Part shown: one piece after another, positions 29,485 to 41,097 of the stretch
Numbering within the stretch: the stretch's first letter is position 1
Layout: each line of letters begins with the position of its first letter
Assembly (NCBI GenBank): GCA_020536535.1
Contig: JAHLWZ010000053.1
Span: forward strand, 1-64,000
From: Pelomyxa schiedti
Lineage: Eukaryota; Protista; Evosea
Reading direction: 5' to 3'
Length of the DNA: 64,000 nt
Notes under the pieces: generated by a model
Database searches by the model: none
What the model was told of the DNA's origin: nothing
What the model saw: only the letters and a program-made list of their open reading frames with translations
Made by a program: the position numbers and the translations under genes

Positions 29485-32400
29485 TTATGTACATAGGCGA
29501 GACAACTCTGTGATGGTATCGTCGATGAGAGAGGAGAATACGGAGTCGGCTATGTGCTTGGTGACTTGTTGGTGTGTGTTGGACTTCTCTCGCTGGTCCC
29601 AGAGGGACAGTGCTCTCTTGCATATCATTTTTGGGAGAGGATGGTGTGTGGTGGTTTGAGGGGATACCCACTGCGATATGGTGTGTGATATATTGTTGTG
29701 AATGTCGTTTTGGTGCATAAGATGCAGCTGCGAAGTGGGTGACAGGTAGCGGCAAGTATTTTGCCAGGTGTCCGGAGACTTCCTTCCAGCTGGTAAGACC
29801 TCCAAGGCCTCACATATCAGGTCAAATTTCTGCAGGTGTGGTCAAATGGGGTTACCTCTTTATTATAAAATGGAGCAGTGGTGATTTATACCAGGCGCCT
29901 AAGTGCTTTATCATATTTAGGAGGACCAGTAGTTTCCAGATTTCCCGCCTCCAATTGTTCAAATATGTGCTCCCCTACTGGAAGGAGCCGAGACACATCA
30001 ACTATATCACCAGTGATTCCGCAGTGGCGTGTTGATTCTGAAACAACGTCTCGGGAATACGAAGACATTGAATCAACTGAGAGGATGAGTGGTGGAGGTT
30101 GTGCTGTGTTTGAAGGTGGACTGTCGGAAATAGGAAGGGTTTGTGCCGAATCTGACACTGATATTGAATATTCCATTGCTGGTGTGGGGGGAGAAGTGTT
30201 GGTTAAGACTGCGCTCGTTGAGACTTCATCCCCAAATACGAGTGCATCAATAGTGTCATTCAAGATCACTTTGAACATTGCTTCAGAAATATCCCAAGTG
30301 AACACAAATTCCTTTTTAGCGATTTGTGATTTAGCAAGGGCCTGTAATTGGTATCAGTAAGGATTATCAGCCTGTGGGCAACCTGCATGCGACATAGGCA
30401 ATGCTTGAAATTTTCCCATGACAGCACAGCTTCACGTCTAAACATACACTTACGCACACGATCTCGGAAGGTGGTTCTATTACAAAGCGGCTGAAGAGTA
30501 CTTTCATCCGAGGTAATTTGATCCCCGCTACTTAATGTGAGTTGATGGCTATCTGTAGCTGTCTCTATTTCTGAATGAGAACTCTCCGAATCTGTGTCTT
30601 CAGAACACAGGTTAGCAATTTCAGTGCAGTCAGATACATCACTCGGGAATGAATTTCTTACGACAGGTGCATTTACGGGAGGGGTAGGGACACCAACGTC
30701 GCACTTGGAGTCAGTTGAGGGGTCTTTCGTATTGGGAAGTTCTTTTATACTTTTGATAATGTGAATGCTATTTCGGATTGGTACAACACCAAGATCGAGT
30801 CCTTGGCTGGGGCTGGTATAAGGATCTTGTGGGATGGGCATATGATGTTGTCCGTGTCCTCTGGCGCGCGGATTGCATGGTGTACCAGCATTATATTGCT
30901 CATTAGTAGGTCTTGAATTGGCACTGGGGTCAATATTGCTCCCGGAAACTTGATGGCTTGCAATGTTGGTATCGGCCTTCTTTGCTCGTGGCGCATTTGT
31001 CCTCCGAGCTACCTGCCTCTTATGTGTATTATGAGGTACGTCCACTGATCGAGGTGGTAAAGTGGTCTCTTCACAGACTATTTGTATTGTATCATAAGGG
31101 CGCGGTCTGTTACTACAGCTTTGCGTAGCTGAAGCGGACTGAACGGATGACATGGTGCTACTGTAACTTTCCCTTCCAGGGGAGGTAGAGACATCAGAGC
31201 AGTCACTTGTGGACCATTTTGCCCTACTGTTGGAGCCATGTTGAGATAAGCTACAGAGACAGCAACATGGCTCGGAGGATGATATTTCCGTGGACTGCGC
31301 GGCTGAGCCCTTATTGTACTTAAGCAACAAGAAAGGGAAGGGTGAGAAATTACCACAGATAAGGTAGCACCACATAAGCTGCAACAGGAAAAGGAATTAT
31401 GTTCCGAAAAGTCCGAAAGCGGTTCTCTGAACTTTGAGGAGCTAGATACATCAAAAAAGTTTCCTTGTTGTAGCGCATTGGATGCCTTACTGTGCTTCAC
31501 TGTGAGCGAATGCTCAGGTTGGATGGAGAGCGGTGTTGAACTTTCTTGTGGAGTCATAAGTCTTGTGAGCAGGGACACAACACTGAACTGAACCGAAGAG
31601 CCGTTTTGATTAAAAGGAGCAGGATATTCGGAGGATATTGATGTAAATGAAGTCCGCTGCCAGGTGTGAGTACTTGTGCACGCTTTATTTGCTCTGTATC
31701 GGCGCCAGGCTCTCTGAATGATAATTGCGGCATTACTTTCGCGTTTCAAGTTTTCCCACAGTAGTGCAGGTGAGTTCAGTGTTCGGAAAGCCTTGGAAAA
31801 TTTAAGTACGATGCATGACATAGAATTTAAATAATAAACCTGAAAGTCTCTCTTGGATGTAGGACCAGCTATAAAGTCTTGTTGGAAGTTTTCTGCTGTT
31901 TTCTGGCAGGAATTTCTATTGCGATAGAGCTGTGCTATTTGTAGCTCAAATAATTTGCTGTTTGCTTCAAGATCTACAGATAGATCAGAACAAGGGGAAA
32001 AGCAGGAAGGCAAGTACCTGCAAGTTCCTGCTGAAATCTATTAGTTGACAGCGGATCAGAACTGGAATGTGGTGATATGAGGGGTACTTTGGGGTCAGTT
32101 GGTGAGCCAAAATTTTTGAACTCTGAAAGGGGACTAGTTGGGTTTATGGTGTGTGGTGAGGTGGGGTCCAGTGCAGATTTGGGAGCCACAGCTCTAAGTG
32201 GGGTGGAGGAGACAGGATGTGGGACTCGTGAGGTCCAATCCCTGGAGTCAGAAAAGGATGATGAAGTGGTGGTACTCCCCGGGCACACCCCACGCTCTGT
32301 ACGGGGGGGCCCTTCACATCGTGTGGAAGGTAAAGGTGAGCTATGACGCACTATGCTTTCCTCTTGCCCATCTATAACAGGAGGTACTGGGGTTGGTCTG

Positions 32401-33527
32401 TTGGGGGAGTGCAGTGGTTTCCCTTTTTGACTCACTGTAGGTAATTGCTTGTGGTGCTGAAGAATTCTATTAACTTCGGTAAGAGCTATATTGGAATGCC
32501 ATGTTCTTGACCTGGCACCTTTGTCCATACGCAAACATTTTAGGTCTGTTGTCAACTGGTTTGGCTAAGTGCTTTGAAATGCTGATTCTTTTTGCGGTTT
32601 CCTGTCTCTTTTTTTCAATGTATTCCTTTTTTCCAAATTAACATGTATTAACTCAAAAGGGAGCACACTTTGAGTTGTTTTTTTTCCTCCTCTGTCAAAA
32701 TTTTGGGCTTCCGAGAATTTTGTTCCATTGAGTCGGAATCCAAGTTTAACTGGGAAGAGTGTTTCTGTTTAAGAAGTGTAGGAGCCCATACATTTGGTTC
32801 TTTTTTTGCAACAGGGGGGTTGATTTGTCCAGGTAAGTGGGTCTTGGCATGCCTTACTGTTGCAGGGGTTACATCCGTACATTTTGGTGTAGCCTCTTTT
32901 GGCTTGGAAGGCACTTTGTTTTGGTGCAAAAGTGAACTCTGTTTGGATGCCACATGGGACCCTAGGTGATGTTGAGGATTCCTACGAGTGACACTTGGTG
33001 GCTTTTCAGGCAATTCCACAGATGTTGTCTGTACCACAATGGGTTCCTTTTGCAAATGTCAGAAAGTTCGCGTCGGTGCTCTACATTTTGTTGAAGTAGC
33101 ACAAACGAGGAAACATTTCCACTCGCGCAGGGCGGTTCCAACCCTACAGGCAGTAAAACATTACAGTTTTCTCCCGATCTCCTTTTCTGCACGTATTACG
33201 ATGCGTAAGTGCATAACAGACTGTACCTTATCAATTGAAGACTGCAATTTTCGCACAGCCTCTGCGCACAAGTGAACGACACGTGAGAGGTGAAAAATAG
33301 TAACCTTTCCTCCGTTGGATCTCGGCTCTTTCCAGGTCCTCGCTTCTTTGCAAAGAGTAAGAACACAAAATACCAAACCATTTGTCTACGATCTACCGGT
33401 CTCTAAGATCCACACGTTGGGGCTCCACAAGGGTGACCTCTCTGCATACCACTCTAATTCCCGGTCCGTTGCTCATTGCTAATCGTCTTTCGAGAATGAG
33501 ATCTGGAATTTTTGTCTGGCAATCCAT
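29485..33527 (-). CDS. Large low-complexity protein with IQ motif and DUF4378/CEP350-like C-terminus (start approximate)
   Basis: IIIQRAWRRYR (IQ); terminal HIADSVFSSLIDDTITELSRL* resembles the CEP350/DUF4378 end; long open exons (30266-32013). Confidence 0.5.
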
Positions 33528-33648: not shown

Positions 33649-35244
33649 ATGAAGATCACAATCAAGACACTGCAAAAGAAGGAGTTTTCCTTTGATGTGG
33701 AGACCACGGCGAAGGTATTTACTGCCGCATTTTGTGTCGTAGACGTAAGCTTATTTTTTTCGACCCACACGGTGCACTATAGGTCATTGAAATTAAAGAG
33801 AGAATTGAACGCGAGCAATCGTTCCCGGTTTCATGGCAAAAGTTGATTTTTGCTGGTAAGATTCTCGAAAACAACGCAACCCTCGTGGAGCAAGGAGTAA
33901 CTGATAATTCTTTCCTCGTGCTTATGACAAGAAAGGTTACTCACTCGTGATTCGCTACGAAAGATTTCTTATCTTCTTTAGCCTGCAGATGCCCCTGCTA
34001 CTCAGGCAGCTACTCCTGCCCCCCCTGCTACACCCACGCCCACTCCAACTCCAACTCCAACCCCAACGCCGACTCCGACTCCAACTCCCGTAGCCACTCC
34101 AACCCCAACGCCCACACCCACGCCAACCCCCACCCCAACTCCCACGCCCACAACTGCAGTTAACGTTCCGTATGCTACTTCATGACTCTTCCCACTTCAC
34201 CAACCCTTTCTTTAGACAAGGTAACCAGCTTGTCATGGGAAGCGACTATGAGAACACGATCAAGAACATTTGTGATATGGGATTTGAACGTGACCTGGTA
34301 ATCAAGGCATTGAGAGCAGCCTACCACAATCCTGATAGAGCCGTCGAGTATTTGACTTCAGTGAGATTCCTTATGGGTTTTTTCCCTGTTGGCTAACATC
34401 TATTAAGGGAGAGGGCATTCCTGACGTGCCTGATATGCCAGCAGCCTTTGCCCCACGAACTCAGCCACGTACTACTCCAACCCCCACCCCAGCTACCCCT
34501 ACCCCTACTCCCACTCCTACAACCCCTGCCACGCCAGCAACTCCTACTCCAACTCCAACAACTCCCTCAGCGCCTGGCATGCAAGGTGTTCCATTTTCTA
34601 TGTTCGGTGGTGCTGGTATTTCCCTTTCTCCGGTTTCTGTTGCATTTATTTGCTCTCAGGGCGCGGCAGTGGTGGTGCAACACCCGCAACTGGTGGCCCC
34701 ACTGGCGGTGTGCATCTTTTTTCCCTTTGGAGGTTTTCACTTTTCTTAGGTGGTAGAGGAGGGCCTCTGGACTTCTTGCGAACTGATCCCCAATTCCTGG
34801 CCATGCGCGACATGATCCAACAAGACCCACGTCTTCTGCAACCAGCCATTGCTTCACTTGCAAGATCAAGACCCGAAATTTTACAGCTTATCCAGCAGAA
34901 TCAAGGAGATTTCCTGCGACTTATGGCGGAGTTAGCCCCTGGTCTTGGTGGTGGTCCTGCAACTGGTGGAGGTGGTGAGGGAGCGATGCCAAGGTATGCA
35001 CCTTGAAGTATTGCTTTACCTCTAAAACTACAATAGATCCATTCAAGTCACTCCTGAAGAGAAGGCGGCAATTGAGCGGGTAATTTTTCTCTTTTTCACT
35101 TCCACTGTACTAACTTGCACCAAGTTGGAGGCTCTTGGCTACGACCGTGCTACCGTCATGCAAGCGTATTTTGCTTGTGACAAGAATGAGGAGTTGACAG
35201 CCAATTGGTTGCTTGAACATGGCCATGACGATGACCAGGAGTGA
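33649..35244 (+). CDS. RAD23: UV excision repair / proteasome shuttle RAD23 (UBL-UBA-STI1-UBA)
   Basis: MKITIKTLQ...[10 protein letters not shown]; [26 protein letters not shown]; [10 protein letters not shown]; [14 protein letters not shown]...[15 protein letters not shown]. Confidence 0.97.
34030..34150 (+). repeat. (Thr-Pro)n hexanucleotide repeat in RAD23 linker (second tract at about 34470-34565)
   Basis: Tandem ccaact/ccaacc/ccgact units. Confidence 0.85.
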
Positions 35245-36314: not shown

Positions 36315-39300
36315 TCAAAATTCATTACGGAAGAGGACGCTCTTCCGTTTGTGGCGAAGCGCTAGGCGGCACAGCAACAAAACGGATGTAGCCGTCAGCG
36401 TGTGTAGAACGACGGCGGCGAGGAGGATCCAAAACGCTGGCTCTGGTGTGGCTGTAATACTTGCGCACACGTCCTCGTGGTTGAGTGCGGCATCAAAGTA
36501 TTTCTCCAGCACTGCATTGACCGAAGCGCACTTTGTTGTGGTGAGAAGTTGAGAAAACTGCTTGAGCTGAAGGAAAAACCCAACAAGTACCGCTGTGAAA
36601 ACCTGATAAAGGTCAGCGTAAAATATGCGTAAATGGCATACGTCGACGGCAGACCAGGCGTATAAACTCTCGCTAAGGCACATTAAAATCTCTTGGTGAT
36701 AGAGTTTGACAGGTAGAACCCAGAGCAACAGAATGGAAAGTATGCTGCAAAGTGGAAGAGCAATGACAGTAAGAGTAAAAACCACGATTGTAATGAGTGT
36801 GCGGAAGCTGAGTGAACTTGACTTCAAAATGCATTGTGGTACTTGAATTAACGAGAAAGGTCTTGATGAAGGTGAGTTGAGTGCATTGAGGACCCATCCG
36901 GCAGCACCGCCTATCTGAAACCCAAATGCTAGTTCCTTCAAAGAAAACGCAAGGAGAAGTACAGATAAAATGAGACATATTGCCACCGTTGATGCTGCTA
37001 CTACCCTCAAAGAGTAGTGCCGTATCCTTGCCAGGGCCGAGAGGCACAAGGGAGTGCTAGGCGCGGGTCTAGTTATAGATTGAACTCTACACCTCATTTC
37101 TTGATAATTTGAGTAGTGATGCGCAGCAACAATGGAATGTGTAATAATCAAGCATAGTACTGTTCCAAGTAGAAAGCACGTCAAACCATACAGGGGCTCC
37201 ACGTGCAGAGTCCCATTTAAGGGTGCCTCCACTGAATTTTGTTGTGGCGGAATATCCAATGATGTATCAAATGCTATTGCCATGAGCATCAGCACAAAGA
37301 AGGCAGTAAGGGACCACTTCCCAAACATATCTAAGGGATATTAAAAACTAACCGGCTAAATGGAGACGATACTGATAAGAATAAGAATGACCTCCCGCTT
37401 CTTGATTGAAAGATATGTAAGCGGGACAGTCCACACAAGTAGTAGAGCTGCCAGTTTGAGGTATGGCCATACACCTGTTAGAAACACAAGAATGACTGCC
37501 AGAGCCCTTACACCTGCTTCCCAAATGATCTTTATGCATTAGTGAAGATTCACAGTATTGTACTTACATCGAGACATCCTGAAATATTGAAGATGAATAT
37601 AGGCGGTAGTTGAACAGTCCGCTTTGCGCCAGTGGTGACAGAGAGGTAAACCCCACTAGAGCCAGTTGTGTTGGAGGACACAAGTAGAACGAAATCTGCA
37701 AGTATCAACATGGGTACTGAGTAACGCACTGCAATATGTATGAATCTGTTCCACATCAAGCACTCAGAAACATGCTTTCTTTGTTTCTCCTCGACTGAAT
37801 TCGCTGATAACTTGCTCCTGTGAGCATGACAAAACCAGCTGATCAATACAACTACCCAAAACGAGCTTGCTGCTGCAATGAGGGCAGAGTATGTTGCTAT
37901 CTTATTTGCAGTTTCCAGTGGTTTCCTGAAATCCTTTACAGATGGGCATGTTGAATTGGACAGCAGCAACAGAAGGAAGGTGTTGAAATTGTTTTTAAGA
38001 GGAGTCATCACAACTTCATTGAGGACAGGAGTAAACGTTGCTGAGAATGCCTTGTTGAATAGTACCAAGACACTATTGAGGACGTCATTGAGATCAAGCT
38101 CTAGCATATCAGCCTCCGCCTTGGTGTCTATCCTAAGGCTTGTGTTGCCCAGTCTAAGTAAGAGATCCATCATTTTTGAAGTATTTCCTTCAAACAGGGA
38201 TAATAAACATTCCAGATTGTAGCACTGTGCTTTTGTATAATTGAAAGATCGTTGCGGAAAGAACGCCATCTGTAGTGTGGAATACAGACCGAAGTCTGTG
38301 AGTAGAACAGTGAAAGTTAGATCTTCATGTAGCTCATATAAATCATGCAACTGTGGCGAGACCAGCGATATATCAAACTGAAGAGTTATATTGGCACCGA
38401 AGTTGTCCAGAAGCGGTGTGGATAGAAGTGTAGCCGGATCGATTGGTATCAGGAATTCAAACTCCTCCCAAGACGTAAGTCCAAAAAGGCTGATTCTGGT
38501 AATATTAAAGGATAAACCGAGTACTTCCCCAAGTGAAATATTTTTACAAAAAGCAGTCTCTCTGGAAATACTTCCTAGATTATGGTAAATGGTGGATTCG
38601 GCTTCATTTCAAATCTTACCTGTGTTGTTTGTTACATCTTTCATAATCTTATTGACTCCAGCTATGCCTTCAATACCCACCAGATCATTTAACAGATAGG
38701 TCGCAGCCGATACTGCAGAACAGTTCTGTAAATTCTGTGCCCCTGGCCGGATCAGTGGCAAAATGGGTGGAAATTGCGGGCCAATAACCATGTGATATGT
38801 TCTTTGATACACATAGGAAATGGCCTGTGTGCCCCAAAAGTTGATTTGGGCTGAAAATTCTTTACAAATTGCAGAAGCGAGAAGAGATTCAATGTCATAG
38901 TTGGCAAGAAGTATACTGGGGCGGTCAATATCGACATGGGAATGATGATTCACGATGTTTGGGGAACTAGAAAATTGGAGGTGGATATCTGCATGACAAT
39001 AAGAAGTATTCAAAGCCGTAGGCAATCCGGAGATGGAATCGAATTCTATAAGAGATATGCCAACAGACATGGAAGAATTCTCTAACGTGCTCAGTACGCT
39101 TCCCCCTCGTTCCGTTTGGCGGCGGTTTTTAATATGGCGAGACCACCACTCTGCTGTGCAAGTAGCTCCAATTCCAATGGCATCAATGTTGATCCCATTT
39201 TCTACGTTCACCGGCACAACAGCATCCATAGAGAAACCAGTGCACACAATCGATGTGACATTGACAAATACTTCATGTTGCACTCCAGGCGTGCTGAAGT

Positions 39301-39442
39301 TGAAGTGAAGACTCAGATCCGAAGGTGCAATCTCCAAATTCTCCAGAAAGCATCTCAGATCGCATCCCTCTCCCTTTATTAGCCAACACAAGGAAAACAG
39401 CCACAACGTCAGTCTCACATAGTTTCCAACCAGCACACCCAT
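36315..39442 (-). CDS. Multi-pass membrane protein: signal peptide, BPI/TULIP-like luminal region, two PqiA-like TM repeats
   Basis: Repeat 1: IWEAGVRALAVILVFLTGVWPYLKL...W..P...GKWSLTAFFV. Repeat 2: ITIVVFTLTVIALP...LLLWVLP...YAWSAVDVF. N-terminal beta-rich glycosylated domains ending in helices (LLASAICKEF; LNEVVMTPLKNNFN). Confidence 0.7.
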
Positions 39443-39682
39443 CTTCTTTCTTAATTTATATCTCTCTGTCCTGGGCCACCCATTCCGCAAACCGCGGCAA
39501 GATACACCACTCCCCTGCCAAAGTGTCAAACAATCTTTTATCCTCAAACTTTTAAAGACACATAACACAAGAAATTCTTCTCTATTAGAAAACACAAAGG
39601 CCTTCGATCCACCCATTAATATAATAGGTGGATAAGTGTGAGTTCTGGGCTTGTTTGACGTGATGAGTGGCACGCCACGAGC

Positions 39683-41097
39683 TCAGAATGATAAGGAATC
39701 CAAGTCTAGGCCACTAGCCATGGCACTGAGGTCCAGACCCGTGGTTATGATTGGTTCCCCTTGATCGGGTGCATCACAGAGTTGTGACTGAAGAAGAGCT
39801 GCAAGCTGGGCATTTACCTCGGTTTTTTCTTGCTGAAGTGTGGCATTTGTGGTACGGAGCGTGGCCATCTCGGCTTGTAGGCCTATTATTCAATGTTACA
39901 TCATCACCCTTTAAACCACATAACACTGCACTGGGGGGGGAGTCATACTTTTAATTGTTTCACTATCATGCTTTCTCTGTTCCTTGTGCTGAGGGACAAC
40001 ATAAGTATAACTACCGACTTACTATCAGAAAAAACTACCTGACGTAATTCTTGTGCCAAAGCTTGACACTTTTGTTGCAATACAGCCATCCCTTGAGTGC
40101 TGTTGTTTCTCAATTCTGCCGCGGTAGTTTCAGCCTAGTGCAATGTTAGTGAATGTGAGTACCACTTTGACATAGTTACAACATGCGCTATTTGTTCTTT
40201 CAAAACCCTAATTTCCTCTTTGGCTTTCTCGACTTCCTCCAACTGAAAAGGAATTAAAAGGACTCAGGGTGCGCAGTTGGGTACCAATAGAGTTGGAGAA
40301 TTATGTCTATGGTGCTTATGCTGCATGGTAAGTGTAAGTACTCGGAGCGATTTTGTGTACATAAGGTCAAGGGAAAGGTACCCTATCTCCATTAATTTGA
40401 TCAGCTGAGGTTCTTTCCGCAGATGATTTTTCTGAGCGGTGATGGTGCTTGTGGTGTGATCTGTGACTCCCCCCTGGCTGTGGAGATGTCGATTGAAGAT
40501 ACTCATCAACAATCAACGCGAGTTCCTCATAACTGCCACACTGCAGGGCCACTATTGGCGGTGTCTGGTGTGCCAATGCAACATAAGGGTGCGAGAATGG
40601 AAAAGGAACAAGAAAACTCACGGTTGTAGGGAACGGTGGATGGTCCGCGCCAGCTTTCGCAACGGCGTCGGGTGGGGCTTGGTCCCCAATCCTTAGGAAG
40701 AGCCAGGTGTTTGTTGGTTAAGGTTTTTTTTTTTTTTTTTTGGGAGGAGGTTTAGACTAGGTCAGAGAGGGCAAACCAAGTCACAAAAAAGAACATGCGG
40801 TTCCCCTTCTTCGACGCATGGAAAAAGCACATCAGGACTTCATTAGGGGACAAATTGGGAATCATGGACTGCAGCCCGCCACGGCCACTGTCCAGCACAA
40901 CATATTTCCCAAGCGACTGAGCTCTCATTATAACCCTAACCAAATGCACAAATGTAAGCACCACGAATCAAAAGGGTAAGTAAAAAAAAAAAAAAAAGTA
41001 TTGTGGAGACGCGCAGGAGATCTCTCAGCCACGTCATCACGCAAACGTACCAGTCGTATTTTAGCGACACCACCGCTGCCATGGCAGTATCCGCCAT
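39683..41097 (-). CDS. ADF-H (coactosin/drebrin-like) domain plus coiled-coil protein
   Basis: Spliced YDWVIMRAQ...LDSGRGGLQSMIPNLSPNEVLMCFF...FFFVTWIGDQAP..AVAKA; C-terminal heptads EEVEKAKEEIRVLKEQ, LQQEKTEVNAQLAALL. Confidence 0.55.

Follow-up and report, generated by a model that had tools for sequence, protein, structure and literature searches.

Amoebal proteins of the CETP/BPI type that are anchored by a C-terminal PqiA domain were mentioned by Wong & Levine (2017; PMC5507252), and a preprint of September 2026 (bioRxiv 10.64898/2026.09.11.750981) named the class TUPAL and described a '2xBPI N-terminal' arrangement across lineages that include the Amoebozoa. The only class member with functional data is PfTUPA of Plasmodium falciparum (PF3D7_0214800), which lies in the membrane of the digestive vacuole with a lumenal TULIP domain, is required for the clearance of internalised membranes and recycles digestive-vacuole lipids (bioRxiv 10.64898/2026.09.11.750981). 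In bacteria, a periplasmic pocket is the site from which LetA delivers lipid to the LetB tunnel (PMC13017536). Here, we analyse a gene in a 64 000-nucleotide stretch of the Pelomyxa schiedti genome (contig JAHLWZ010000053.1, positions 1 to 64 000; hereafter the window). The gene lies on the minus strand at 39442-36315 and is very probably a single nuclear gene for a type-I-anchored protein of ~987 residues that belongs to the TUPAL class, with a role in lipid handling proposed by analogy with LetA-LetB and PfTUPA. The fusion of TULIP domains to a PqiA module is already published as a class; the gene is a mis-annotated and unusually divergent addition to it and opens no new kind of system. What is new here is the mis-splicing of the GenBank record and the replacement of Asp by Ala in the GKWSLxD motif, which occurs in this paralogue alone. 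No publication linking Pelomyxa to PqiA was found in the literature searched.

The encoded protein consists of a signal peptide, two TULIP domains, an anchor helix, a short cytosolic linker and a predicted PqiA/LetA-like pseudodimer of two four-helix modules. With the 2xBPI arrangement of the TUPALs it shares the domain order (two BPI-like domains followed by PqiA), the predicted exoplasmic placement of the TULIP domains and the lack of zinc ribbons; it differs in being recorded as 'hypothetical' from a mis-spliced model, in escaping Pfam, in being the most divergent member sampled and in lacking the Asp of repeat 1. PfTUPA likewise has a double PqiA module joined within one polypeptide to a TULIP-like domain, but its single ApiTULIP domain is C-terminal to PqiA, whereas the Pelomyxa protein has two N-terminal BPI-like domains and an extra anchor helix. 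Such differing TULIP-PqiA arrangements have been argued to have independent origins (bioRxiv 10.64898/2026.09.11.750981). Two tandem tetraspanin-like four-helix modules with extracytoplasmic β-sheets, as in Escherichia coli LetA (YebS) and PqiA (9n8w/9n8x; PMC13017536), are predicted for the Pelomyxa protein, which also has the motifs P..K and G(K/R)WSxxDxF, the latter with its Asp in repeat 2. Unlike these, however, the Pelomyxa protein has no zinc ribbons, and its partner is a covalently fused TULIP tube rather than a separate MCE tunnel (LetB or PqiB). Human BPI, LBP and CETP (1bp1, 4m4d and 2obd) also carry two tandem TULIP barrels (~460 residues) after a signal peptide, but are soluble, whereas the Pelomyxa protein is anchored in the membrane and continues into a transporter module.

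The gene was delineated by open reading frame (ORF) reading and homologue alignment. From a start ATG at 39442 to a stop codon ending at 36315, the frame is interrupted four times, briefly, by GT-AG introns that separate five exons (coordinates of minus-strand features are given in the direction of transcription). Exon 1 (39442-38620; 274 full codons plus one base) encodes the hydrophobic core of the signal peptide (39412-39377), a CxxxC motif (39364-39350), the first TULIP domain and the start of the second. Intron 1 (38619-38575; 45 nucleotides, GTAAGA...TAG, phase 1) would introduce a stop if unspliced; the resulting junction (...NNT-G-SIS...) fits the family consensus TNxTG and is identical in the GenBank protein from this locus, KAH3767401.1 (P0001 in our analysis). 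Exon 2 (38574-37568; 335 full codons, uninterrupted) contains the end of the second TULIP domain, the anchor helix (37900-37832), the linker, which is basic and cytosolic, and, from PqiA repeat 1, the first transmembrane (TM) helix TM1 (37744-37676) and an exoplasmic β-hairpin (37654-37583). Removal of intron 2 (37567-37530; 38 nucleotides, GTAAGT...AAAG, phase 0) yields IIWEAG, a match to the nearly invariant family motif DMWxAG. Exon 3 (37529-37373; 52 full codons plus one base) carries TM2 of repeat 1 with TGVWPYLK. Intron 3 (37372-37331; 42 nucleotides, GTATCG...TTAG, phase 1) also leads the unspliced frame into a stop, and its junction (...ILI-N-MFGKWSL) is again identical in P0001 and abuts at residues 692|694 of P0003, the closest paralogue. 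Exon 4a (37330-36642; 229 full codons) begins with the GKWSLTA segment, the Ala codon of which is GCC at 37304-37302, and continues through TM4 of repeat 1 (37193-37119), TM1 (37010-36939) and TM2 (36806-36711) of repeat 2 and YAWSAVD (36662-36642). Intron 4 (36641-36603; 39 nucleotides, GTATGC...ATCAG) is in frame and does not interrupt the ORF. Relatives carry no insertion at this site, exon 4a ends at residue 928 of P0003 and exon 4b begins at residue 929, and P0001 likewise splices this intron to give AWSAVDVFTAV. Exon 4b (36602-36315; 95 codons and the stop at 36317-36315) encodes the remainder of repeat 2, with the segment VFTAVLVGFFLQLKQF, conserved Cys and the last TM helix (36437-36369). 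At 38-45 nucleotides all four introns are tiny, and the one that is in frame is invisible to ORF reading; introns of this kind can hide in other long ORFs of the P. schiedti genome and mislead gene models, as happened with KAH3767401.1.

The exon translations were used as separate pieces in all scans and searches, not as one joined chain. For the alignment, the five translations were added as fragments to 59 full-length relatives, and a profile for testing the exons was built from the 59 relatives with this gene excluded. Each exon matches that profile (exon 1, E = 4.9e-24 over residues 25-274; exon 2, 1.3e-47; exon 3, 1.5e-12; exon 4a, 1e-49; exon 4b, 6.2e-16), and the matched profile positions follow one another in order and abut. 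The exons are also colinear on P0003 (exon 1, residues 8-277; exon 2, 272-640; exon 3, 641-692; exon 4a, 694-928; exon 4b, 929-1014). Because all five exons reach significance with this gene left out of the profile, and because the matches are colinear and abutting, they stand above chance.

The ectodomain (39370-37952, ~465 residues) is composed of two tandem TULIP domains of the BPI/LBP/CETP type, the first at ~39370-38735 and the second, which contains intron 1, at ~38725-37952. An earlier note on this DNA, drawn from the letters alone, had described a signal peptide followed by Cys- and N-glycan-bearing, β-rich domains each ending in a long helix, and had taken the ectodomain for a BPI/TULIP fold. 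All of these elements were found. A hydrophobic, signal-like segment spans residues 11-22 of exon 1, and the ectodomain carries 13 N-x-S/T sequons and conserved Cys residues. A profile of the family ectodomain alignment with the window's ectodomain as its first row (A1) matches BPI (1bp1, N-terminal domain, E = 1.1e-18), LBP (4m4d, 2.6e-16), CETP (2obd, 1.9e-6) and Takeout (0.009). In this profile two family cysteines, represented in the window by C149 and C193 of exon 1, align to the 135-175 disulfide of BPI. The ectodomain was modelled with AlphaFold2 from residues 1-428 of P0001, which has the correct junction between exons 1 and 2 and lacks the first 71 residues; the model has a predicted local distance difference test score (pLDDT) of 87.1 and a predicted template-modelling score of 0.77. 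Its secondary structure according to DSSP alternates strands, a helix at 104-149, further strands and a helix at 360-409, the two helices being ~45-50 residues long. The top Foldseek matches of the model are all TULIP proteins (LBP, BPI, CETP, SPLUNC1, Der p 7, JHBP and Takeout), with LBP, BPI and CETP at E values of 3e-7 to 3e-6. In VIA-align the model gives a Z score of 8.4 against BPI and, over residues 169-411, of 7.5 to 6.3 against the single-domain TULIPs BBP, Takeout and Der p 7. The top VIA matches, too, are all TULIP proteins, with moderate Z scores of 8.4 to 5. Compared with human BPI, LBP and CETP, the second domain is recognisable by fold only (Takeout, Der p 7 and JHBP, Z of 6-7.5). 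Among the relatives, 10 of 49 match the Pfam family LBP_BPI_CETP (PF01273).

The membrane half (37744-36369) comprises two PqiA/LetA-like repeats, at 37744-37119 and 37010-36369. A HMMER search with the exon-4 ORF against 1.84 billion representative sequences returned 627 relatives at E ≤ 1e-3; a large share of these are 1000-1250 residues long and are matched at their C-termini. A word-index search with the same ORF gave no match, as expected from its length filter, which leaves out relatives of ~1000 residues. The ORF is aligned end to end (query residues 2-327) at E values of 1e-32 to 1e-14, and relatives that are ~30% identical across the full 325 residues carry Pfam PqiA twice. When nine relatives were scanned, the eight besides P0001 had PqiA above threshold in two stretches each, and in an alignment of family TM regions that includes the window's row (A3) Pfam PqiA (PF04403) was found in 51 of 52 rows, the exception being the partial row of the window. 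The profile of A3 matches E. coli LetA/YebS (9n8w) at E = 1.9e-5 with both repeats, and all 30 matches (30/30) obtained with ESM-Atlas features of exon 4 are PqiA clusters. An AlphaFold2 model of full-length P0003 (pLDDT 82.8) matches LetA (9n8w_A) at E = 2e-5 with probability 1.00 over 451 columns and also matches BPI. These results bear out the PqiA-like TM modules that the earlier note had read from GVWPYLKL, GKWSLTAFFV and YAWSAVDVF: the first stands in exon 3, the second at the start of exon 4, and the third reads as quoted once the in-frame intron 4, which the homologues support, has been removed. The cytosolic linker (HAHRSKLSANSVEEKQRKHVSECLMWNRF) contains no CxxC pairs and thus no zinc ribbons. 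Because eukaryotic LetA-like proteins are without zinc ribbons (PMC13017536), their absence excludes the bacterial LetA subtype and not the superfamily. The P0003 model also weakly matches TARPs, a resemblance that is described in the LetA paper (PMC13017536).

Beyond the 13 sequons of the ectodomain, two more are located in the hairpin of PqiA repeat 1. From the signal peptide, the lone anchor helix, and sequons in both the ectodomain and this hairpin, the TULIP domains and the PqiA β-sheets are predicted to lie on the same exoplasmic or lumenal side, and the same orientation has been reported for TUPALs (bioRxiv 10.64898/2026.09.11.750981). If the protein works as LetA-LetB and PfTUPA do, its TULIP tube would draw lipid out of membranes in the lumen or outside the cell, such as those of ingested prey, internal vesicles or perhaps symbionts. 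The lipid would then be passed between the TULIP tube and the PqiA module, in either direction, and the latter would carry out its insertion into, or extraction from, the plasma membrane or the membrane bounding a compartment of the phagolysosome type. The most plausible site would be a phagolysosomal compartment or the cell surface; the phagosome or lysosome guessed in the earlier note fits PfTUPA, since the TULIP domain of that protein faces the lumen of the digestive vacuole.

Several observations weigh against this assignment. The structural scores of the ectodomain against BPI are moderate: the Z score given above is accompanied by a large global root-mean-square deviation and a template-modelling (TM) score of ~0.25. 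Since global TM-scores are low, the inter-domain arrangement may be unlike the boomerang of BPI, or the inter-domain geometry of the model may be off. None of the window's own pieces matches a BPI or PqiA domain in Pfam or NCBIfam, and the mis-spliced P0001 scores 16.6 bits for PqiA, below the cutoff of 23.8. Because Pfam recognises neither domain in these pieces, both domain assignments rest on homologues, profiles and fold. For the membrane region of the Pelomyxa protein, a LetA-like double four-helix fold is predicted from the colinear alignment to the modelled paralogue P0003. RNA was available from a single run (X1, single-cell RNA-seq), with contigs at 39251-39582 and 39588-39700+; the gene body is uncovered, and no splice joints are seen. 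The remaining points concern the rate and pattern of substitution. In a quick maximum-likelihood tree (IQ-TREE) the protein belongs to one clade with three paralogues from Pelomyxa and with Mastigella (SH-like approximate likelihood-ratio support of 95), and its terminal branch is the longest in the tree (2.5 versus a median of 0.78), a length partly inflated because the row is partial and includes 13 residues encoded by an intron. Comparison with a second allele, from run X4, shows 11 differences, of which five are synonymous, five nonsynonymous and one intronic.

The same divergence is visible at motifs that the family otherwise conserves. The W, P and K of WPYxK and the G, K, S and D of GKWSLxD are invariant in repeat 1 of the family. 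Here, repeat 1 reads GKWSLTAFF, with Ala in place of an Asp that is present in 120 of the 120 relatives carrying the motif, and the preceding family Asp (LDALGKW) is replaced by Asn. Repeat 2 (AWSAVD|VF, across the intron 4 junction) keeps its Asp, so that the difference between the two repeats pointed out in the earlier note is upheld. The other invariant residues are retained: the W, P and K of WPYxK, the G, K, W and S of GKWS, the Thr and His of TM4, and the WSxxDVF of repeat 2. HMMER aligns S321, K328, S364 and D367 of LetA (numbered as the chain index minus 18) with the S, K, S and D of the family's repeat 1, although this mapping of repeat 1 onto the C module of LetA depends on weak HMMER stretches of 15-18 bits. 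When profiles A2 and A3 are compared with LetA (9n8w), the N-terminal repeat of the family resembles the C-terminal, polar-network module of LetA and the C-terminal repeat resembles its N module. The conserved polar residues thus appear, by sequence, to lie in the opposite repeat relative to LetA: the N-terminal repeat of the eukaryotic proteins bears the signature of the LetA C module (S, K, S, D), the Asp of which is Ala in the Pelomyxa protein. The polar network of LetA is intolerant of mutation, and deep mutational scanning marks the position as critical (PMC13017536). Because the repeat-1 Asp aligned with Asp367 of LetA is replaced by Ala, the step at the membrane may be changed or weakened, or repeat 2 with its WSxxD may perform it.

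A bolder proposal, which we put forward tentatively and consider rather doubtful, is that the protein is a natural 'polar-network-null' TUPAL, in which the Asp is lost and the rest is intact, and which would work passively or through the second repeat, or else would be a non-transporting, tethered BPI-like binder of lipid or lipopolysaccharide (LPS). In the former case a TULIP-PqiA protein could work passively or via its second repeat without that Asp; in the latter, Pelomyxa would keep a membrane-tethered binder, for example for ingested bacteria or prokaryotic endosymbionts. The Asp-to-Ala variant offers a ready natural comparison for the role of the polar network in eukaryotic PqiA fusions.

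The lost Asp, the long branch and the equal numbers of synonymous and nonsynonymous allelic differences are compatible with relaxed constraint, and the strongest competing explanation starts from them. The gene would be a degenerating or neofunctionalised paralogue that has the TUPAL architecture and has lost PqiA-mediated lipid movement, leaving a pseudo-transporter, a tethered BPI-like binder of lipid or LPS, or a gene nearing loss. To the substitutions at the two family Asp positions and the branch length can be added that the window's row is the sole one of 52 to fall below Pfam PqiA, albeit as a partial sequence. However, ~987 codons are intact with canonical sites in the four tiny introns, and the other invariant residues of both repeats are in place. 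The 5:5 ratio is still under the neutral expectation and comes from very few sites; inflation of the branch length has been described above, and the alignment that equates the substituted Asp with LetA D367 is itself weak. We regard degeneration as distinctly unlikely. The TUPAL assignment is preferred, and the gene is intact and evolves faster than the other Pelomyxa paralogues, of which there are at least four with this one included. The TUPALs are expanded in the Archamoebae, which have these at least four Pelomyxa copies together with copies in Mastigella and Mastigamoeba.

The best match in the search, KAH3767401.1 ('hypothetical protein Pelo_716 [Pelomyxa schiedti]'), differs from the five-exon model in five places. 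It starts 71 residues late, at residue 72; it uses an alternative intron 2 of 50 nucleotides, by which the conserved IIWEAG is lost; TM4 of repeat 1 is spliced out; part of TM1 of repeat 2 is spliced out; and the last 48 residues, including the final TM helix, are missing. Since each segment omitted by GenBank is conserved in the relatives, the five-exon model is the better one, and the 50-nucleotide intron 2 and the three further GenBank splices were rejected because each removes family-conserved segments. These errors account for the lack of domain annotation on the record; paralogues from P. schiedti are already entered as 'Paraquat-inducible protein A'. The revised model corrects a public entry that hides both the TULIP and the PqiA domains.

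The junction between the two halves lies within exon 2, which runs as one ORF from the second TULIP domain through the anchor helix into TM1 and the hairpin of PqiA repeat 1. Because this exon spans both halves in uninterrupted DNA, they belong to one gene, and the coupling of a bacterial membrane module to a lipid-carrier fold in one chain, as the earlier note had put it, is borne out by the locus itself. The same single chain is found in transcript-derived relatives from Mastigella eilhardi, Phalansterium, Pyxidicula, Endostelium and Pigoraptor, and further full-length relatives occur in Balamuthia, the choanoflagellate Diaphanoeca and the parabasalid Histomonas. That two adjacent genes, one for a secreted BPI-like protein and the other for a PqiA-like membrane protein, were misread as one is hardly credible: RNA contigs do not reach the gene body and the GenBank model departs in five places, but exon 2 is a single 335-codon ORF across both halves, the 59 colinear relatives are single chains, several of them transcript-assembled, and the GenBank model joins both halves too.

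A bacterial contaminant or an operon-like context was considered and ruled out by the ordinary eukaryotic neighbours of the gene, such as RAD23 (XPC-binding). The ORF concerned (34650-35003, plus strand) encodes a RAD23-type XPC-binding domain (Pfam PF09280, E = 5.5e-19) and is unrelated to lipid transport. A long ORF on the minus strand (31081-32013) gives a weak match to the IQ calmodulin-binding motif (E = 6e-5, below the cutoff), and no Pfam match is obtained for the long minus-strand ORFs next to it (30269-33055). Matches of the exon translations to Integrin_A_Ig_3, Cornichon and narI in Pfam/NCBIfam were dismissed as noise (E > 0.03). In Mastigamoeba balamuthi (EukProt), a PqiA-like region is located at the C-termini of two long proteins, P0008 (1556 residues, 'putative 7-dehydrocholesterol reductase') and P0005 (2660 residues), which are either merged neighbouring genes or larger fusions with lipid enzymes. 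At the 5' end of the Pelomyxa gene, the RNA contig 39251-39582, which alone touches the gene, ends at 39582 with ~25 non-genomic A residues on the plus strand (low depth, ~6), which suggests a polyadenylated transcript antisense to this end of the gene.

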